From positions 1-49,043 of the forward strand of contig CBFFRP010000388.1 of NCBI GenBank assembly GCA_965644295.1: DNA of 49,043 bases, given 5' to 3'. The notes below the pieces were generated by a model. That model searched no databases. It saw only the letters and a list, made by a program, of their open reading frames with translations, and was not told where the DNA came from. Shown one piece after another: positions 17,150-49,043 of the stretch. A program made the position numbers and the translations under genes. How positions within the stretch are numbered: the first letter of the stretch is position 1; the number at the start of each line of letters is the position of its first letter. The DNA comes from Paraphysomonas bandaiensis (lineage: Eukaryota; Protista; Chrysophyceae).

Positions 17150-18409
17150 TTACTGGAAGAACAAGTTGTCGCAAGCAACGCAGCACATATTAGTGCCTCG
17201 CTCCATGTAGAAGTATCCGTTCAATCCCCACGAATCGCCTTGAGAACATGATCAAACAGGTTCAAGTATCAGCAATACATACTCCAACTTACCCCATGAA
17301 TTACGAAGGATCCAATAGTCTTGCTTCGTTGTTTCATCGGTTCCCCACCCCACAATAGCAACAGCATGATTATGTTTGTCGGAAGGACAGTTGGCATCAC
17401 TGTAGATTCCCCCAGAATAATAGTAGAAGGAGTCTACGACCTCTATAGAGGTCTTAATGGCCGTGGTCATAAAGTACTCACAACCATCACCTCCTATGAG
17501 GCTCTTAAGGCAATCTTCATCCCCTACAGCACAAGGTGCAAACCACTCCTGTACGTACGCAGCGGCTTCTGAGTTGGAGTGTGCGCAGGAGGCTGTGTCG
17601 GTTGCGGTGTAGGGATGAGAAGTAGAAGATGGAAGCGCAGCGATATCCACAGCACAAGCCATTGGCTCAGAGGCTCCACCGCCCCCGCATCCATTACACT
17701 CCGTGCAACAATCAACCAAAACCTGTTCGGAGAGCTGCCAGGCGTCGCGATCGCTGGTGAGGGCGGCTGTACCGTTACTATCCACAGTAGACCAAAGGAA
17801 GTGAGACGCCTCTGCAGCAGCCATTGTGCCAAAGGCCCAGCAAGACCCACAGGAACCTTGCGTTATCATGCATACACATCACTACTAACGAGCACAGATA
17901 TCAATAACTACCTTGGTCTTTAATGGACGTGGAGAACGGGCGCAGGTCACAAGTATTGGGATTCTTCAGACCAGATAGATACTTCGATTTCGGTTCCGCA
18001 TCGGTGCTTCCAGATGCCTTCGACTTATGCTACCACACAAGAGAAGTATTATTGGCAAATATGTGTAGTATAGAGCAGCATATTGTACCACATCTACATA
18101 TGTTTCAGTCATTATATACTGCTTTTTACTGTGAGTATCCATATCAGAAAAGATATTAATTCCTTTTGAATAAGAATGATTGGCTTCATTCCAGTCGAAT
18201 ACATTTTCAACAGTGGAGGTAAAAATAGCGGAGTGAGCTGGGTCTTCAGAGGGGTTATAAATTTTATTAAAATATAATTTATATCGAGCGTACAGGTGTT
18301 CCATGGAGCCATTATCCGTTAATTGAAATTCTTTGCGTGTGTTAGGAAAGCCCAATGAGAGGGCGAGAGATGGAGTGGAGAGAAGGGTGATGATAGATGA
18401 GAGTTTCAT
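17150..18409 (-). CDS. Papain-family (C1A) cysteine protease with signal peptide and I29 prodomain, multi-exon
   Basis: QGSCGSCWAF, LSEQ.LVDC, NHAV, YWILRNSWG; prodomain GINIFSDM; last exon SWGLNGYFYMERGTNMC. Confidence 0.93.
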
Positions 18410-18713
18410 GGTTAATGTGTGTGATTATATGTGAGGGTTTTTAACTGATAGGCATAATATCAGTATCCATATACAGGTATACCTATACAGAGAGTACTGC
18501 AGTACACAGATTAGAGATATAGGAGATGGGAAATGTACTGTACGTTTCTGTCAACTTTTATCCACGCACTCGTTTTTCCACAAAAACACTCTCTCCACAC
18601 CCATTCCGACGACTCTCCAATTCTGACACGAGCATTCCACAAGCATTCCATTCTACCCCTGGCGGACTCAAATTATACCCACAACTCCATTACACTGTAC
18701 GATATGTAACAAT

Positions 18714-20255
18714 ATGGCTGCAGCTCATCACCACGATGGTGGCGATATATTCGTGTTTGCTCCTTCCGAGAATTTGGTGGCCGCTCACCTCCCATCACTC
18801 CGCGATGTTGTTCCAGAACACACCGTACTTCACGGTGGGCAGGAAAGGTTCAAATCGAACACAAGAAATCCACCACAAGATGGTGTGAGGTGTCCTGGGT
18901 GTCTTCATCATTATACCATCTGGAAGGGATTCCTGAAACACGTGCGCGCAAAGAAAGATGTTCGACGGCTACCAATAACAAATGACGAAGAAAGGGACGA
19001 CGTGTTCTACTGCAAAGCCGCAGAGATGAAAAAAGCAAGTAAAGATGATCGCTTGGAGTGCACTCGTTGTCTTGTGTGCATGTCGAGTGCGGAGTTGCAA
19101 GCAGCATTAAGGCACGACTGCCCCATCAGCAACGCCACCACATTCATACCTCCAATGGGCAGGTGCAAGGGTTGTGATTTAATTGTTAAAGTGAAGTGTA
19201 GCTGTCCCGTATGCAATGTGGCGCCCCATAGTGTTGAGTTTAGGATTCAGCCTGATCCGTGGTCGGATTGTCCCTACCCTAAGTATCCACAGCATGCTGA
19301 AGTCATCTCGGAGTACGATAAGAAGCGGCGACAGATTTACATGAATGCACTGGCCGAGCAGACTCGAATGAACAGCACTAGAGCGTCTTTTGAGGTCAAT
19401 AACTTTGCTCTAATTCATTTGAATAAACTCCTGCAAGAGCCGGATGGATACATTGTGCTGTCAGAGTTGGAGCGCCAAGCACCTGGATTTCTTGAGCGTT
19501 GCGGGGCATCAGATGCAGTTATGTCCAGAGTTCGGGAAGAACACCAGAAAGACCAGACGGACCAACGATCTTTTTTACTTCATCCCCATGCCACCTACCG
19601 ATTAGTTGAAACCATGAAGAATCTTGAGGCGGCCATTGATATGGATGTTCCGATTAAGTCTTTGATTGCAACCATTTCCCGACATAATGCTGTGCGCCTA
19701 TTAACAGAGGAGCAACGAAAGGCACTGGACGACGCATCTGTGCGCGCGGTTGCTTCGGCTCCACCGGAATATGTGGAGGGAGTTACAGACATTCCTAATG
19801 CAGACGATGGGTTGGCTGCCAAAAGACGCCGCATGGAGGAGAACGGTTGTGCTCCAACCAGTGCCCCTGAGCTGAGTGCAGTTGAACTCCAGGCCCGTGA
19901 GGAGACTGTGACTTTCCTGACATTCTTCAGACAACAGTTGTACGCTCACTTTGTTGCTTTAAATATAGGAAGAGAGGCCCAGGTGTTATATGAGGACTGC
20001 AAAGAAACAATCGCACGACTCCTCACCATCAGTGTCTCAGAAAACAAGCGGCTTGCGGACAGAATTTTTTCCCTGCTACATCCAGTGTCGGCTCCACTGT
20101 CGCCAAATAACGCGTACAGTCACGATACAGAGATGGACTTGAAAGGTTGTGTGGCTGCTGTCAATGCGGTGGTGGTTGTGTTGAGGCCTGATTTAGTTCA
20201 TGATTTGAATGAGCTGAAGCTGGAGCCCACTTCAGATGGCACTTTCCCGGAGTAG
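18714..20255 (+). CDS. Transposon-borne protein of unknown function, Cys/His-rich N-terminal half
   Basis: Intronless 513-aa ORF with ATG inside the left TIR. Contains CPGC..FLKH (C2H2-like), CTRC, CKGC and CPVC. Confidence 0.8.
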   Translation: MAAAHHHDGGDIFVFAPSENLVAAHLPSLRDVVPEHTVLHGGQERFKSNTRNPPQDGVRCPGCLHHYTIWKGFLKHVRAKKDVRRLPITNDEERDDVFYCKAAEMKKASKDDRLECTRCLVCMSSAELQAALRHDCPISNATTFIPPMGRCKGCDLIVKVKCSCPVCNVAPHSVEFRIQPDPWSDCPYPKYPQHAEVISEYDKKRRQIYMNALAEQTRMNSTRASFEVNNFALIHLNKLLQEPDGYIVLSELERQAPGFLERCGASDAVMSRVREEHQKDQTDQRSFLLHPHATYRLVETMKNLEAAIDMDVPIKSLIATISRHNAVRLLTEEQRKALDDASVRAVASAPPEYVEGVTDIPNADDGLAAKRRRMEENGCAPTSAPELSAVELQAREETVTFLTFFRQQLYAHFVALNIGREAQVLYEDCKETIARLLTISVSENKRLADRIFSLLHPVSAPLSPNNAYSHDTEMDLKGCVAAVNAVVVVLRPDLVHDLNELKLEPTSDGTFPE

Positions 20256-20781
20256 ACCCTTAGCATTGTGTCTTTTCTTATTAGTTTGTTTTCTTATTAT
20301 AGCCTGCTGATTCCAGATATAGCCTTTTATTATTATTGCTTTTCGCTGTTATTATTATTCAATCGTTGTCAAGAAGTTTTATATAAATTTTATTATTGTT
20401 AATTAATGTATTAATTATTAATCATATTATGTCATCACTAGAACTGTGTAATAATCACACATTCACCCAAATTTTTAATGGACTCATTTTGAGCCCAAAT
20501 TACACAAGCTTACTCTCATCACTATTGCCGTGAGCACTGCGCTTTCAATTTCGTATGAAACTAGTAACATATCATATAATTACAATGTGAAAAGTGAAAA
20601 GCATTCCACCGACATATAGCTAATAATATATTAAACAGATTAATATCATTTGCAAGGTATTGCAATATACTGTTCCAAATTACTTAAGAATAATAATTTA
20701 GAATAGTTAAGAATAAATAACCAGATTAATAAATACTAAGTGCAGCGCAGTCACAACGTGCACTACAACCACATAGCACCC

Positions 20782-21738
20782 CTATGATTGTTCACCGCGG
20801 TAAGGTGTGTACGGATACGTCGGGACATAAAAGTGTGCAGCTGCCATATACTGTTTGACGTCAAACCTACTAATTGTATCCAAAGCCGTCCTTAACCAAA
20901 ACTTTAATGAATTGGGCGTGACTTGTGGACTATGCTCTTGAAGAAACTTGTCCACGTAACTGAATACCCATTCCACTGGTGCAAAGGTAGGGGACGAAGC
21001 AGGACGAAAGACAACATAATGTCCAGCATCCGTTAGAGCTTTGACCACAACTCCAAAATGAGCACTCAAGCGATCCATTGTAATGACACGTCTCCCAGTA
21101 CCCTCAAGACTGGGAATTAACAGGTACACAACAAAGTGGTAGAATACCTCCGAAGTTGTGCCATGTGGATAAAATATGTTGTTGATCACACCTTTGCGAG
21201 CGTCGATAGCAACTAGCAATGAGTAGTGGGGCAGCATGCGGGCTTTGTTTCCAATAGAACTGCTTGAGGTGCTCCCAAGAGAGTGACCACAGACACGCCG
21301 TGAATTGGAGACGTAAAAGCCGCTTTCGTCTAGGTCCACAATGTCCCGATAATAAACCCCAAGCACACCCGGTCGCAGTGAATGATCAGGCGGATTGACC
21401 CAAAATGCCACTCTATCATTCTCGTCAAGATACTTGGCGATGTACTTCATATGCTTTTTCTTGAAACCAAGTCGGAGGAGTGCTCTGCACACTGTGGATC
21501 GGCTCACAGTCACGTTGCAAACAATTCTCAGAAACTCTGCGCATTCAAGCAGAGTGGTATCCTTAAAACAACATTTGTACCAAAACAATACTGTATATTG
21601 ATGCCTAGACAAACCATGTTGTGATATTCCTTCCTCTGCCTCAACAGGCTCATGCTCAACAAGTCTGTGATCAATTCGAAACACCGGATGATCATAAATG
21701 AAGTCTTCAGAAAGATCCAATACAGGAGCTGCAGCCAT
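20782..21738 (-). CDS. IS630/Tc1-like DDE transposase (DD33E)
   Basis: HTH-like VSRSTVCRALLRLGFKKK; LDESGF; MDRLSAH; SPTFAPVEWVF. 33 residues between the second D and the E. Confidence 0.92.
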   Translation of the reverse strand: MAAAPVLDLSEDFIYDHPVFRIDHRLVEHEPVEAEEGISQHGLSRHQYTVLFWYKCCFKDTTLLECAEFLRIVCNVTVSRSTVCRALLRLGFKKKHMKYIAKYLDENDRVAFWVNPPDHSLRPGVLGVYYRDIVDLDESGFYVSNSRRVCGHSLGSTSSSSIGNKARMLPHYSLLVAIDARKGVINNIFYPHGTTSEVFYHFVVYLLIPSLEGTGRRVITMDRLSAHFGVVVKALTDAGHYVVFRPASSPTFAPVEWVFSYVDKFLQEHSPQVTPNSLKFWLRTALDTISRFDVKQYMAAAHFYVPTYPYTPYRGEQS

Positions 21739-22754
21739 ATTGTTACATATTGTACAGTGTAATGGAGTTGTGGGTATAATTTGAGTCCGCCAGGGGTAGA
21801 ATGGAATGCTTGTGGAATGCTCGTGTCAGAATTGGAGAGTCGTCGGAATGGGTGTGGAGAGAGTGTTTTTGTGGAAAAACGAGTGCGTGGATAAAAGTTG
21901 ACAGAAACGTACAGTACATACTCTGCATATCTGGATATGCTGTTGTAGAATTCCTAGACAGACCTTCGCAGAGATACAATCATACAACACACCAGTACGC
22001 ATACACCAGTATACTTACACCAGTACACATTCAGCAGTACAAATACTCCAGTACACAAACACCAGGAGAGGTCATTGATTCCCACCATTTAAGATACTCT
22101 CTATTAGGGGAAGGTGAATACAGAATACAACCACTGTCAAGCCATTAATCATCATAGGCAACACTAAGTGTAGCTGCCAGCAGACATTGCCCTACTCGTA
22201 ACTACACTGCTTCTAGGGTGTGACGTTGAGTTCAGCCCTGTACTAGTAAACATGGTAATTTCCCACGGTTGCTTTGTTGCAAGCTATTGACTTACTTGCT
22301 GCAGTAGTATGTCACAAGCAAGTATCATCAAAAATACAATACAGTTTAGTAGAGACAATGCACTGCCATTTTGATATATGCACAAATTTACTGAGCTGGC
22401 AACACATATCCCGAACGTCGACAACTGATTCTTTTATGTTGATGCTGGTAGACCGTTGACATGACAGTCGATTGACATGCTACTATGTCGACATCATCAT
22501 TCATGCAGAGTGAGTATCAGCTCATGTAGCCAGGGAAGCGTGGGTTTTGACCGAGCTAGGACTACAGTTGTGAGGACCCACTCCATTCACTTTTGATAAG
22601 CGCCCGTGATTTGGCACTTATAATCCAATGTACCATAAGCTTTCGAAACAGTGTGAAACTATTCAGGCTTAAAGAAGCTTTCTCGTTTCTACCAGAGTAT
22701 TCAAGTAAAATGATTACTATGGAAAATAATAGCTTTCCATGAGTTCCATCATAA

Positions 22755-43057: not shown

Positions 43058-46000
43058 CATTGATGATAATATTTTTCATACTCTACTCTGGTGCTCTGAG
43101 AAGAGCGCTAGTCATTGTGAGAGTGAATAATGCAAAAATCTATTTCTGAGGGATATAATTGTGTGATGGAATCAATCGTGTTGTTGTTGTTGCTATGTTG
43201 TGGTGTGTATGGCAGCTGTTGCTGTAATTGTTTTTGCTGTGGGTGTTATTATATATATCCCATTGATGATAATATTTTTCATACTCTACTCTGGTGCTCT
43301 GAGAAGAGCGCTAGTCATTGTGAGAGTGAATAATGCAAAAATCTATTTCTGAGGGATATAATTGTGTGTTCTGGAATCAATCGTGTTGTTGTTGTTGCTA
43401 TGTTGTGGTGTGTATGGCAGCTGTTGCTGTAATTGTTTTTGCTGTGGGTGTTATTATATATATCCCATTGATGATAATATTTTTCATACTCTACTCTGGT
43501 GCTCTGAGAAGAGCGCTAGTCATTGTGAGAGTGAATAATGCAAACATCTATTTCTGAGGGATATAATTGTGTGTTCTGGAATCAATCGTGTTGTTGTTGT
43601 TGCTATGTTGTGGTGTGTATGGCAGCTGTTGCTGTAATTGTTTTTGCTGTGGGTGTTATTATATATATCCCATTGATGATAATATTTTTCATACTCTACT
43701 CTGGTGCTCTGAGAAGAGCGCTAGTCATTGTGAGAGTGAATAATGCAAAAATCTATTTCTGAGGGATATAATTGTGTGTTATGGAATCAATCGTGTTGTT
43801 GTTGTTGCTATGTTGTGGTGTGTATGGCAGCTGTTGCTGTAATTGTTTTTGCTGTGGGTGTTATTATATATATCCCATTGATGATAATATTTTTCATACT
43901 CTACTCTGGTGCTCTGAGAAGAGCGCTAGTCATTGTGAGAGTGAATAATGCAAAAATCTATTTCTGAGGGATATAATTGTGTGTTATGGAATCAATCGTG
44001 TTGTTGTTGTTGCTATGTTGTGGTGTGTATGGCAGCTGTTGCTGTAATTGTTTTTGCTGTGGGTGTTATTATATATATCCCATTGATGATAATATTTTTC
44101 ATACTCTACTCTGGTGCTCTGAGAAGAGCGCTAGTCATTGTGAGAGTGAATAATGCAAAAATCTATTTCTGAGGGATATAATTGTGTGTTATGGAATCAA
44201 TCGTGTTGTTGTTGTTGCTATGTTGTGGTGTGTATGGCAGCTGTTGCTGTAATTGTTTTTGCTGTGGGTGTTATTATATATATCCCATTGATGATAATAT
44301 TTTTCATACTCTACTCTGGTGCTCTGAGAAGAGCGCTAGTCATTGTGAGAGTGAATAATGCAAAAATCTATTTCTGAGGGATATAATTGTGTGTTATGGA
44401 ATCAATCGTGTTGTTGTTGTTGCTATGTTGTGGTGTGTATGGCAGCTGTTGCTGTAATTGTTTTTGCTGTGGGTGTTATTATATATATCCCATTGATGAT
44501 AATATTTTTCATACTCTACTCTGGTGCTCTGAGAAGAGCGCTAGTCATTGTGAGAGTGAATAATGCAAAAATCTATTTCTGAGGGATATAATTGTGTGTT
44601 ATGGAATCAATCGTGTTGTTGTTGTTGCTATGTTGTGGTGTGTATGGCAGCTGTTGCTGTAATTGTTTTTGCTGTGGGTGTTATTATATATATCCCATTG
44701 ATGATAATATTTTTCATACTCTACTCTGGTGCTCTGAGAAGAGCGCTAGTCATTGTGAGAGTGAATAATGCAAAAATCTATTTCTGAGGGATATAATTGT
44801 GTGTTATGGAATCAATCGTGTTGTTGTTGTTGCTATGTTGTGGTGTGTATGGCAGCTGTTGCTGTAATTGTTTTTGCTGTGGGTGTTATTATATATATCC
44901 CATTGATGATAATATTTTTCATACTCTACTCTGGTGCTCTGAGAAGAGCGCTAGTCATTGTGAGAGTGAATAATGCAAAAATCTATTTCTGAGGGATATA
45001 ATTGTGTGTTATGGAATCAATCGTGTTGTTGTTGTTGCTATGTTGTGGTGTGTATGGCAGCTGTTGCTGTAATTGTTTTTGCTGTGGGTGTTATTATATA
45101 TATCCCATTGATGATAATATTTTTCATACTCTACTCTGGTGCTCTGAGAAGAGCGCTAGTCATTGTGAGAGTGAATAATGCAAAAATCTATTTCTGAGGG
45201 ATATAATTGTGTGTTATGGAATCAATCGTGTTGTTGTTGTTGCTATGTTGTGGTGTGTATGGCAGCTGTTGCTGTAATTGTTTTTGCTGTGGGTGTTATT
45301 ATATATATCCCATTGATGATAATATTTTTCATACTCTACTCTGGTGCTCTGAGAAGAGCGCTAGTCATTGTGAGAGTGAATAATGCAAAAATCTATTTCT
45401 GAGGGATATAATTGTGTGTTATGGAATCAATCGTGTTGTTGTTGTTGCTATGTTGTGGTGTGTATGGCAGCTGTTGCTGTAATTGTTTTTGCTGTGGGTG
45501 TTATTATATATATCCCATTGATGATAATATTTTTCATACTCTACTCTGGTGCTCTGAGAAGAGCGCTAGTCATTGTGAGAGTGAATAATGCAAAAATCTA
45601 TTTCTGAGGGATATAATTGTGTGTTATGGAATCAATCGTGTTGTTGTTGTTGCTATGTTGTGGTGTGTATGGCAGCTGTACAGCTGTAATTGTTTTTGCT
45701 GTGGGTGTTATTATATATATCCCATTGATGATAATATTTTTCATACTCTACTCTGGTGCTCTGAGAAGAGCGCTAGTCATTGTGAGAGTGAATAATGCAA
45801 AAATCTATTTCTGAGGGATATAATTGTGTGTTATGGAATCAATCGTGTTGTTGTTGTTGCTATGTTGTGGTGTGTATGGCAGCTGTTGCTGTAATTGTTT
45901 TTGCTGTGGGTGTTATTATATATATCCCATTGATGATAATATTTTTCATACTCTACTCTGGTGCTCTGAGAAGAGCGCTAGTCATTGTGAGAGTGAATAA

Positions 46001-49000
46001 TGCAAAAATCTATTTCTGAGGGATATAATTGTGTGTTATGGAATCAATCGTGTTGTTGTTGTTGCTATGTTGTGGTGTGTATGGCAGCTGTTGCTGTAAT
46101 TGTTTTTGCTGTGGGTGTTATTATATATATCCCATTGATGATAATATTTTTCATACTCTACTCTGGTGCTCTGAGAAGAGCGCTAGTCATTGTGAGAGTG
46201 AATAATGCAAAAATCTATTTCTGAGGGATATAATTGTGTGTTATGGAATCAATCGTGTTGTTGTTGTTGCTATGTTGTGGTGTGTATGGCAGCTGTTGCT
46301 GTAATTGTTTTTGCTGTGGGTGTTATTATATATATCCCATTGATGATAATATTTTTCATACTCTACTCTGGTGCTCTGAGAAGAGCGCTAGTCATTGTGA
46401 GAGTGAATAATGCAAAAATCTATTTCTGAGGGATATAATTGTGTGTTATGGAATCAATCGTGTTGTTGTTGTTGCTATGTTGTGGTGTGTATGGCAGCTG
46501 TACAGCTGTAATTGTTTTTGCTGTGGGTGTTATTATATATATCCATTGATGATAATATTTTTCGTACTCTACTCTGGTGCTCTGAGAAGAGCGCTAGTCA
46601 TTGTGAGAGTGAATAATGCAAAAATCTATTTCTGAGGGATATAATTGTGTGTTATGGAATCAATCGTGTTGTTGTTGTTGCTATGTTGTGGTGTGTATGG
46701 CAGCTGTACAGCTGTAATTGTTTTTGCTGTGGGTGTTATTATATATATCCCATTGATGATAATATTTTTCATACTCTACTCTGGTGCTCTGAGAAGAGCG
46801 CTAGTCATTGTGAGAGTGAATAATGCAAAAATCTATTTCTGAGGGATATAATTGTGTGTTATGGAATCAATCGTGTTGTTGTTGTTGCTATGTTGTGGTG
46901 TGTATGGCAGCTGTTGCTGTAATTGTTTTTGCTGTGGGTGTTATTATATATATCCCATTGATGATAATATTTTTCATACTCTACTCTGGTGCTCTGAGAA
47001 GAGCGCTAGTCATTGTGAGAGTGAATAATGCAAAAATCTATTTCTGAGGGATATAATTGTGTGTTATGGAATCAATCGTGTTGTTGTTGTTGCTATGTTG
47101 TGGTGTGTATGGCAGCTGTTGCTGTAATTGTTTTTGCTGTGGGTGTTATTATATATATCCCATTGATGATAATATTTTTCATACTCTACTCTGGTGCTCT
47201 GAGAAGAGCGCTAGTCATTGTGAGAGTGAATAATGCAAAAATCTATTTCTGAGGGATATAATTGTGTGTTATGGAATCAATCGTGTTGTTGTTGTTGCTA
47301 TGTTGTGGTGTGTATGGCAGCTGTACAGCTGTAATTGTTTTTGCTGTGGGTGTTATTATATATATCCCATTGATGATAATATTTTTCGTACTCTACTCTG
47401 GTGCTCTGAGAAGAGCGCTAGTCATTGTGAGAGTGAATAATGCAAAAATCTATTTCTGAGGGATATAATTGTGTGTTATGGAATCAATCGTGTTGTTGTT
47501 GTTGCTATGTTGTGGTGTGTATGGCAGCTGTACAGCTGTAATTGTTTTTGCTGTGGGTGTTATTATATATATCCCATTGATGATAATATTTTTCATACTC
47601 TACTCTGGTGCTCTGAGAAGAGCGCTAGTCATTGTGAGAGTGAATAATGCAAAAATCTATTTCTGAGGGATATAATTGTGTGTTATGGAATCAATCGTGT
47701 TGTTGTTGTTGCTATGTTGTGGTGTGTATGGCAGCTGTTGCTGTAATTGTTTTTGCTGTGGGTGTTATTATATATATCCCATTGATGATAATATTTTTCA
47801 TACTCTACTCTGGTGCTCTGAGAAGAGCGCTAGTCATTGTGAGAGTGAATAATGCAAAAATCTATTTCTGAGGGATATAATTGTGTGTTATGGAATCAAT
47901 CGTGTTGTTGTTGTTGCTATGTTGTGGTGTGTATGGCAGCTGTACAGCTGTAATTGTTTTTGCTGTGGGTGTTATTATATATATCCCATTGATGATAATA
48001 TTTTTCATACTCTACTCTGGTGCTCTGAGAAGAGCGCTAGTCATTGTGAGAGTGAATAATGCAAAAATCTATTTCTGAGGGATATAATTGTGTGTTATGG
48101 AATCAATCGTGTTGTTGTTGTTGCTATGTTGTGGTGTGTATGGCAGCTGTTGCTGTAATTGTTTTTGCTGTGGGTGTTATTATATATATCCCATTGATGA
48201 TAATATTTTTCATACTCTACTCTGGTGCTCTGAGAAGAGCGCTAGTCATTGTGAGAGTGAATAATGCAAAAATCTATTTCTGAGGGATATAATTGTGTGT
48301 TATGGAATCAATCGTGTTGTTGTTGTTGCTATGTTGTGGTGTGTATGGCAGCTGTAATTGTTTTTGCTGTGGGTGTTATTATATATATCCCATTGATGAT
48401 AATATTTTTCATACTCTACTCTGGTGCTCTGAGAAGAGCGCTAGTCATTGTGAGAGTGAATAATGCAAAAATCTATTTCTGAGGGATATAATTGTGTGTT
48501 ATGGAATCAATCGTGTTGTTGTTGTTGCTATGTTGTGGTGTGTATGGCAGCTGTACAGCTGTAATTGTTTTTGCTGTGGGTGTTATTATATATATCCCAT
48601 TGATGATAATATTTTTCATACTCTACTCTGGTGCTCTGAGAAGAGCGCTAGTCATTGTGAGAGTGAATAATGCAAAAATCTATTTCTGAGGGATATAATT
48701 GTGTGTTATGGAATCAATCGTGTTGTTGTTGTTGCTATGTTGTGGTGTGTATGGCAGCTGTACAGCTGTAATTGTTTTTGCTGTGGGTGTTATTATATAT
48801 ATCCCATTGATGATAATATTTTTCATACTCTACTCTGGTGCTCTGAGAAGAGCGCTAGTCATTGTGAGAGTGAATAATGCAAAAATCTATTTCTGAGGGA
48901 TATAATTGTGTGTTATGGAATCAATCGTGTTGTTGTTGTTGCTATGTTGTGGTGTGTATGGCAGCTGTAATTGTTTTTGCTGTGGGTGTTATTATATATA

Positions 49001-49043
49001 TCCCATTGATGATAATATTTTTCATACTCTACTCTGGTGCTCT
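43058..49043. repeat. Satellite array, 205-bp unit (203/207/199-bp variants), about 29 copies, running off the window
   Basis: Near-identical units starting CATTGATGATAATATTTTTC; the ORF track repeats every 205 bp. Confidence 0.98.

Follow-up and report, generated by a model that had tools for sequence, protein, structure and literature searches.

The 49,043-nucleotide (nt) stretch of DNA analyzed here (the window), contig CBFFRP010000388.1 of the Paraphysomonas bandaiensis assembly GCA_965644295.1, contains a 3377-bp transposable element at positions 18538-21914. The element carries two convergent genes, one encoding a 318-amino acid (aa) transposase and the other a 513-aa accessory protein (ORF513, also called ORF2), and each gene starts inside one of the two terminal inverted repeats (TIRs). 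An inverted repeat search over 18000-22500 returned one pair only (arms 18533-18726 and 21726-21919, 194 nt, 99% complementary), and the boundaries of the element proper were set by reading both ends and comparing ten copies. The outer five nucleotides of the 194-nt pair represent the TA duplication and a palindromic target (ATGTA/element/TACAT). The 189-bp TIRs of the element differ by a single mismatch (18701, G, versus 21751), and each is composed of a 176-nt leader followed by ATG GCT GCA GCT C of the inward-facing open reading frame (ORF), with both arms ending in AACAATATGGCTGCAGCTC. ORF513 and the transposase share the ATG, three further codons and one base (MAAA), after which they continue with H or P. 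The spacer between the two genes is 526 bp long and has a GC content of 29%, compared to 45% for the element and 41% for the window. The features of the locus are as follows.

18536..18537, no strand: left TA target-site duplication (TA is present at both ends of all seven copies with intact ends)
18538..18726, plus strand: left TIR of 189 bp, starting with CTGTACGTTTCTG; 176-nt leader and the first 13 nt of ORF513
18594-18607 and 18636-18649: direct repeats TCCACACCCATTCC and TCCACAAGCATTCC inside the left TIR
18714..20255, plus strand: ORF513 (ORF2), intron-less gene for the 513-aa accessory protein
18894..19229, plus strand: Cys/His-rich N-terminal domain, presumably zinc-binding, residues ~61-172, with a conserved Cys/His pattern and a predicted local distance difference test (pLDDT) score >90
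19072, plus strand: substitution private to the window copy (T; C in the other nine copies and in all RNA contigs), resulting in P120L in ORF513
19311..19763, plus strand: conserved helical middle domain, residues 200-350, with the motifs DGYIVL-E and RHNAV
19821..19832, plus strand: KRRR basic patch, residues 370-373, in a disordered linker (low-pLDDT segment 358-382)
19878..20192, plus strand: C-terminal helical bundle of the predicted model, residues 389-493
20256..20781, no strand: AT-rich spacer with the 3' ends of both genes, 29% GC
20782..21738, minus strand: transposase, 318 aa, DDE_3; its start ATG at 21738 mirrors the ATG at 18714
21328-21330, 21073-21075 and 20971-20973, minus strand: inferred catalytic triad D137, D222 and E256, from motif alignment
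21726..21914, minus strand: right TIR of 189 bp; leader and the first 13 nt of the transposase ORF
21915..21916, no strand: right TA target-site duplication, from the comparison of copies

This arrangement had been described in an earlier, sequence-only reading of the locus. Its 189-bp TIRs with one mismatch, TA flanks, shared MAAA start and 526-bp AT-rich spacer were all reproduced, as were the two convergent genes each starting within a TIR (ATG 18714 on the plus strand and the mirrored ATG 21738 on the minus strand).

The 318-aa protein matches the Pfam family DDE_3 (PF13358) over residues 133-268 with 34.3 bits against a cut-off of 28.6 (E 2.6e-8), and the transposases of its relatives score up to 52 bits for the same family. 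The NCBIfam IS630 profile (NF033545) aligned over nearly its whole length with an E-value of 1e-9, but its score of 38.2 bits lies below the cut-off of 100. The motifs DLDES, TMDRLSAH and PVEW point to D137, D222 and E256 as the catalytic residues, with 33 residues between D222 and E256 as counted from the motif alignment alone (Tc1 typically has DD34E). No helix-turn-helix (HTH) family was found in the window transposase at E ≤ 1 in Pfam, its profile matched no PDB sequence at E ≤ 1 (and hence no solved Tc1/mariner transposase), and a scan of viral contigs with the transposase alignment produced no matches. The related transposases of the L044, L045 and L046 elements have an N-terminus about 30-45 residues longer than that of the window protein. 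Relatives give sub-threshold PAX/HTH hits for two HTH units and the window clade for the second unit only, and the first unit of this clade seems to have been cut to little more than the helix (V/Y)(F/Y)RIDHRL. A DDE_3 transposase, a TA duplication and TIRs, three features of the IS630/Tc1/mariner (ITm) superfamily, are present in the element, and the Tc1/IS630 affinity proposed from the sequence is upheld by the DDE_3 match above the cut-off together with the TA duplication.

The assembly (62.6 Mb in 669 contigs, with at least seven silicon-transporter genes, on account of which the host was read as a diatom) was searched for further copies. The element is present ten times with 99.1-100% identity on eight contigs: C388 (the window), C2, C433 (two copies), C297, C185, C78 (two copies), C32 and C259. 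In all seven copies with both ends intact, TA is found on each side, and the flanks are unrelated and start exactly at the TIR ends. Since ten copies of this identity exist with TA at each of the seven intact-ended ones, the structure of the element is not a product of chance. The transposase ORF is intact in 10/10 copies with an identical protein sequence, whereas ORF513 is intact in eight, the other two having private 1-nt deletions. Near-identical copies may also arise through segmental duplication or assembly redundancy without transposition, and the two C433 copies do lie in tandem and have a foreign 1059-bp piece in their right TIR that the C259 copy contains as well; moreover, no empty-site haplotig for the window insertion was found in the assembly. 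However, the unrelated flanks and TA borders of seven copies speak against duplication, as does the division of the ten copies into three sub-lineages set apart by shared substitutions, with further haplotypes present in environmental runs. We therefore consider this explanation extremely improbable. The near-identity of the ten copies agrees with the youth ascribed to the element from its sequence, and it was apparently active recently and appears to be still mobile.

Both genes are under purifying selection. Five variable sites were found between the transposase copies, all of them synonymous (5/0, p = 6e-4). ORF513 has nine variable codons, five with synonymous and four with non-synonymous changes, two of the latter four being private to one copy; when only substitutions common to several copies are counted, the numbers are 5/2 (omega ~0.12, p = 0.008). 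The spacer accumulated five substitutions and two indels in its 526 bp. Thus, the copy-to-copy check proposed with the first description of the element revealed a synonymous excess in ORF513, which is not evolving neutrally.

Several individual copies have unusual surroundings. At C78:164549-171388, two copies are arranged head to head with 97 bp between them, each turning its ORF513 side towards the other, and one of the two ORF513 genes is frameshifted. The copies at C2:67071-70447, C433 and C259 are among several that are located in an (ACAT)n/(ATGT)n microsatellite, and the flanks of the C2 copy are mutually inverted and not continuous, so that the palindrome reaches past its TIRs. An older transposase-only relic (C282:27947-28990, L032:5948-6991) has 90% DNA identity to the element and an open frame of 347 aa. 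Its ORF513 and outer TIRs are gone, and comparison with the active copies gave a dS of 0.17 and a dN/dS of 0.26 (synonymous divergence and the ratio of non-synonymous to synonymous divergence).

A word-indexed protein search with ORF513 gave no match, and a metagenome scan with the ORF513 alignment gave nothing that was confirmed. An exhaustive profile search of 1.84 billion representatives revealed 44 related clusters at E ≤ 1e-3, ten of them below E 1e-30, mostly metagenome fragments. On five environmental contigs, a convergent DDE_3 gene was identified downstream of an ORF2 homologue, and a relic of this genome on contig C169 has the same order with decayed transposase pieces. The five contigs are listed below, with identities given relative to the proteins of the window element.

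L036: transposase 50%; ORF2 29% (E 2e-24)
L042: transposase 41% (C-terminal fragment); ORF2 24%
L045: transposase 36%; ORF2 28%
L046: transposase 38%; ORF2 32%
ENA/JGI contig of 3182 nt: ORF2 homologue, then a convergent DDE_3 gene

The transposases of the paired lineages are 36-50% identical to that of the window over near-full length (a C-terminal fragment in L042), and their ORF2 proteins 24-32%. The closest transposase pair, L042/L045 (74%, L042 being a C-terminal fragment), is also the closest ORF2 pair (40%). The relic at C169:238617-240257 (L031:4618-6258) contains an intact 546-aa homologue of ORF513 (~36% identity) followed by decayed pieces of a convergent transposase, with no detectable TIRs around it. 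This paralogue has either survived by chance or been domesticated, and decayed relatives of it were found on C149, C206 and C139.

These data bear on a possible origin of ORF513 by transduplication, in which a Tc1-like element would have picked up a host gene on a single occasion and kept it as neutral cargo. ORF513 has no recognizable transposon-related domain, and the intact C169 paralogue beside a dead transposase could pass for the host source. However, convergent remnants of a transposase lie downstream of the C169 paralogue as well, the related copies on C149, C206 and C139 have the form of decayed repeats, the same convergent pair occurs on the five independent environmental contigs at the divergence given above, and the copies of ORF513 show an excess of synonymous change. 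We regard a single capture as highly unlikely, because the pairing with a DDE_3 transposase recurs in distant lineages and in the C169 relic. The gene pair is old and conserved across lineages, and the 513-aa ORF, which the sequence-only reading took for an accessory factor that might prove to be a one-off capture or to drift neutrally, is a real accessory gene. Taken as a whole, the element is quite probably a recently active cut-and-paste copy of the ITm type, belonging to a previously unnamed ITm clade with two convergent genes.

The extent to which the TIRs reach into the genes differs between lineages. In L036, L043 and L044, the ends have TA followed by CTGTGCTTTTCACC, and TIRs of about 360-400 bp hold the ATG and 31 codons (MPDSPTGKRKSDEISSSDTDVSQTNISDTR) with which both ORFs begin. 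A 55-nt inverted repeat at the contig ends of L046 contains the transposase ATG, with the mirrored ATG on the other side opening merely a 41-codon upstream ORF that overlaps the ORF2 start. Relative to the start codon, the inner TIR edge is located at ATG+12 nt in the window element, ATG+93 nt in L036/L044 and ATG+20 nt in L046, whereas the L045 TIR stops at least 118 nt upstream of both ATGs. Thus, the expected recurrence of ATG-containing TIRs was observed in L036/L043/L044 (transposase 50% identical) and failed in L045. What stays constant is a pair of inward-facing genes, each directly beside a TIR, and the reach of the repeat into the genes varies.

Comparison of the copies in the assembly suggests how such sharing may come about. 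Six copies have a TIR substitution at 18663 together with its mirror image at 21789, and the TIRs are identical over all 189 bp in five of the seven intact-ended copies. The C185 copy has two private TIR changes (21751 and 21847), and the other intact-ended copies of the lineages with the 18663 substitution have identical TIRs. The mirrored substitution and the identical repeats indicate that the two ends are kept alike (homogenized). Since the inner TIR edge drifts between lineages, the sharing of the first codons is probably a by-product of this homogenization and not a requirement.

The identical transposase is also encoded on Tara Oceans and other marine metagenome contigs, and the element was found in 20 public runs, ten of which are recorded as RNA. 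Four RNA runs were compared as Logan contigs over 18300-22150. In the polyA metatranscriptome X1, two separate contigs cover 18697-20376 (depth 36.8) and 20700-21755 (depth 29.2), and run X6 showed the same two-contig pattern. Runs X11 and X13 contributed further pieces entering the spacer from the transposase side, up to 20517. No contig of the four runs covers 20377-20516, and no introns (joints) were seen in the RNA contigs of either gene. Each gene has intron-less contigs of its own in polyA RNA libraries, and the hole in the spacer argues for RNA over DNA carry-over, although it could partly reflect copy-to-copy variation. The contig ends at 18697 and 21755 were considered as start sites and rejected, since they lie exactly 30 nt inside each TIR and represent a k=31 assembly artefact.

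A Pfam DDE_3 search of the assembly revealed a second two-gene ITm family with at least 14 copies, exemplified by a 3479-bp element at C14:36091-39569 (L058:2091-5569) and also present at C134, C241, C247, C551, C249, C128, C217, C357, C439, C611, C294, C297:369348 and C306. The C14 element is flanked by TA, has perfect TIRs of 200 bp and encodes a DDE_3 transposase as well as a second, convergent gene, which is probably spliced. Its transposase ATG is 11 nt inside one TIR edge, and the ATG of the second gene straddles the other. The second gene is unrelated to ORF513 (hhalign probability 0.9%), the transposase is ~24% identical to the L045 type, and nine copies of the family share one transposase frameshift. 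The presence of two unrelated two-gene ITm families in one genome suggests that this layout may be a general adaptation in the host lineage.

With these lineages in hand, the role of the TIRs can be weighed against another explanation, in which the gene pair is real but the ATGs came to lie in the TIRs merely through gene conversion creeping inward, so that the promoters need not be located in the TIR and expression need not be coupled. The window element, L036/L044, L046 and L045 differ in where the inner TIR edge lies with respect to the ATG, which is in line with this, as is the mirrored substitution, by which homogenization does happen; no transcription start site was observed in the RNA contigs. 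On the other side, in every lineage seen and in the unrelated C14-type family (family Z), each of the two genes borders a TIR and points inward, leaving hardly any unique sequence upstream or none at all, and within the element the TIR is the sole upstream sequence able to serve as a promoter. The similar contig depth of the two genes in one polyA library (X1) points weakly in the same direction. We consider the gene-conversion explanation possible but rather unlikely.

Using a 45-sequence family alignment, AlphaFold produced an ORF513 model with a mean pLDDT of 84.7, compared to 47 with three sequences. This gain and the 44 clusters found speak for a real ORF513 family. The model has four parts: a Cys/His-rich region (~61-172), a helical middle (200-350), a disordered linker and a C-terminal bundle (389-493). 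The Cys/His pattern CPxC, CxxCxxC, HxC, CxxC, CxCxxC, H is conserved among ORF513 homologues, and the N-terminal domain is presumably zinc-binding. Language-model neighbours of residues 55-200 are zinc-finger clusters, which we treat as a lead only. The homologues are also basic around KRRR (370-373), making this patch a possible nuclear localization signal. A wide VIA structure search returned only generic helical-bundle matches to residues 382-497, the best with a Z-score of 8.2, below the meaningful level, and an ESM Atlas search with the ORF513 model gave template modelling (TM) scores of ≤ 0.28. ORF513 represents a new accessory protein family with no Pfam entry and no known fold.

From these properties we tentatively suggest that ORF513 may be a nuclear zinc-finger cofactor of transposition that binds DNA or chromatin, a role that is speculative. 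Alternatively, it could be a regulator, either an inhibitor of transposition or an anti-silencing factor, kept to limit host damage or to shield the element. A regulator would be conserved and under purifying selection without any catalytic signature in searches, as ORF513 is, and deletion derivatives with an intact transposase that lost most of ORF2 do exist. However, these data fit a cofactor equally well and distinguish nothing between the two roles, and ORF2-less elements (C282 and the L044 type) were not seen at high copy number in the available data. A regulatory function appears doubtful to us.

In the working model of a TIR-launched gene pair, each TIR would provide the promoter and 5' untranslated region for the adjoining gene. 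Because the ends are homogenized, both genes see the same upstream sequence and, in this element, the same start context. With identical ends, one sequence would direct both transcription and initiation for the transposase and the 513-aa protein alike, which would thereby be co-regulated, the 3' ends of the two genes meeting in the AT-rich spacer. Inward transcription from the 'far' end would in this clade have been put to use for the second gene. ORF513 might then bind DNA or chromatin on behalf of a transposase whose N-terminal domain is reduced, like the Myb-like partner of Harbinger, which is again speculative. In its strongest form, the model would make this widespread marine-protist clade of Tc1/IS630 type an obligate two-component system, in which a transposase with a partly lost DNA-binding domain depends on a zinc-binding protein of a new fold, the two are made in a fixed proportion through identical TIRs, and the layout evolved independently in the second ITm family; we can conceive of such a system but do not hold it to be likely.

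Several observations weigh against the proposed gene pair and its launching from the TIRs. Two of them are the L045 and L046 ends described above, where the TIR stops short of both ATGs or the mirrored ATG opens only a short upstream ORF. On two contigs (L041 and a JGI contig of 2809 nt), 780-1050 nt downstream of the ORF2 homologue contain no recognizable transposase. L043 and L044 are internal-deletion derivatives with ORF2 down to 230 aa and an intact transposase, and ORF2 may therefore act in trans or be dispensable. No transcription start site was observed in the contigs, transcripts may stem from read-through from flanking DNA, and Logan contigs prove neither RNA origin nor strand. The shortened first HTH is read from the alignment and from sub-threshold Pfam hits in relatives. 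For ORF513 itself, no Pfam or NCBIfam family was found, its profile gave nothing below E 0.1 against PDB sequences, and a Foldseek search with its model against PDB gave nothing at E ≤ 0.001. A predicted complex of the transposase with ORF513 had a score of 0.00 with a poorly folded partner, which is evidence neither way.

Other repeats were noted in the window and elsewhere in the assembly. A 5.5-kb element at C58:213319-218825 (L047:1020-6526), located between (ACAT)n and (ATGT)n tracts, has 1226-bp perfect inverted repeats that over their first 41 nt match the termini of the window element exactly, with further occurrences at C111:178368 and C396:1-38. The foreign piece of 1059 bp in the right TIR of the two C433 copies and the C259 copy is the same in all three and is a derivative of the C58 arm, with element positions 36-41 (TTTTTC) duplicated. 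A 547-aa ORF of the C58 element was considered as a tyrosine recombinase, but this assignment was unsupported by searches of Pfam, NCBIfam and PDB sequences, which gave no match. Within the window, a 205-bp satellite with 29 copies of 99% identity and a GC skew of +0.37 occupies 43058-49043 and reaches the window end. A dispersed repeat of ~90 nt is located at 22125-22216, with at least 26 more copies in the genome (72-87% identity) and no tRNA detected in it by ARAGORN.

Elements of the ITm superfamily are the textbook example of a one-gene transposon. Like Tc1, Sleeping Beauty and Bari, the window element has a DDE_3-type transposase and a TA duplication, and its TIRs are in the range of a few hundred bp and contain internal repeats. 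In contrast to these one-gene elements, it carries a second conserved gene for a 513-aa protein and start codons in the TIRs, the D-to-E spacing of its transposase is 33 by our own motif count, and the N-terminal DNA-binding region is shorter than in its relatives. Promoters in terminal sequences have been described for Bari (PMC6446368), and convergent inward transcription from both inverted repeats has been reported for the Tc1-like element Sleeping Beauty (PMC3343047).

The layout had also been likened to that of the maize element MuDR. Mutator elements generate long target duplications (9-11 bp), that of MuDR being 9 bp. MuDR carries convergent mudrA (transposase) and mudrB (function unknown) genes and TIRs of ~215 bp (PMC3440606). 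The comparison stands for the convergent two-gene design, with each gene beside a TIR of ~200 bp, and ends there: the window element has no MULE transposase domain (only DDE_3) and makes a TA duplication, and the second genes are not homologous. The resemblance to PIF/Harbinger serves as a working model only. In those elements, the transposase is accompanied by a separately encoded Myb/SANT-like DNA-binding partner required for nuclear import and end binding, and the target duplication is 3 bp. The window element differs in transposase family and duplication, and the partner in PIF/Harbinger is not Cys-rich.

Within the superfamily, the ciliate TBE and Tec elements have DD34E transposases and extra ORFs, including a zinc-finger protein in TBE, and Tec has very long TIRs (PMC7325037). 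The TBE 57-kDa protein has predicted zinc-finger and kinase domains (bioRxiv 10.1101/2025.03.17.643836). However, these elements contain three ORFs, one of them for a recombinase in Tec, as opposed to two in the window element, and no kinase or recombinase domain was found in ORF513, which is set apart from the TBE proteins by their descriptions and not by sequence. The fungal ITm element Dici, reported in 2026, is young and active, makes a TA duplication and has extra coding sequences (CDSs) of unknown function, a feature called unusual for the superfamily (PMC13469147). As judged by its description, Dici differs in having three CDSs, the central one for a 470-aa transposase that includes a complete paired domain, and TIRs of only 8-33 bp.

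No diatom two-gene ITm family was described in the full-text literature searched, with Repbase and Dfam outside the reach of this search. To our knowledge, natural DNA-transposon tools for diatoms are lacking. The window element, which looks currently active (ten copies with intact genes), is a candidate for insertional mutagenesis. The two-gene, TIR-launched design appears to be rare in the ITm superfamily and recurrent among marine protists, and it raises the question of what a cut-and-paste transposase needs beyond itself. Its structural logic is that of mirror-image ends which each launch a gene, with a partner family spread through marine eukaryotic metagenomes and polyA metatranscriptomes. 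Ciliates (TBE/Tec) and, since 2026, fungi (Dici) are the only groups in which conserved accessory genes of ITm elements are known, and the clade of the window element adds a third, independent case.

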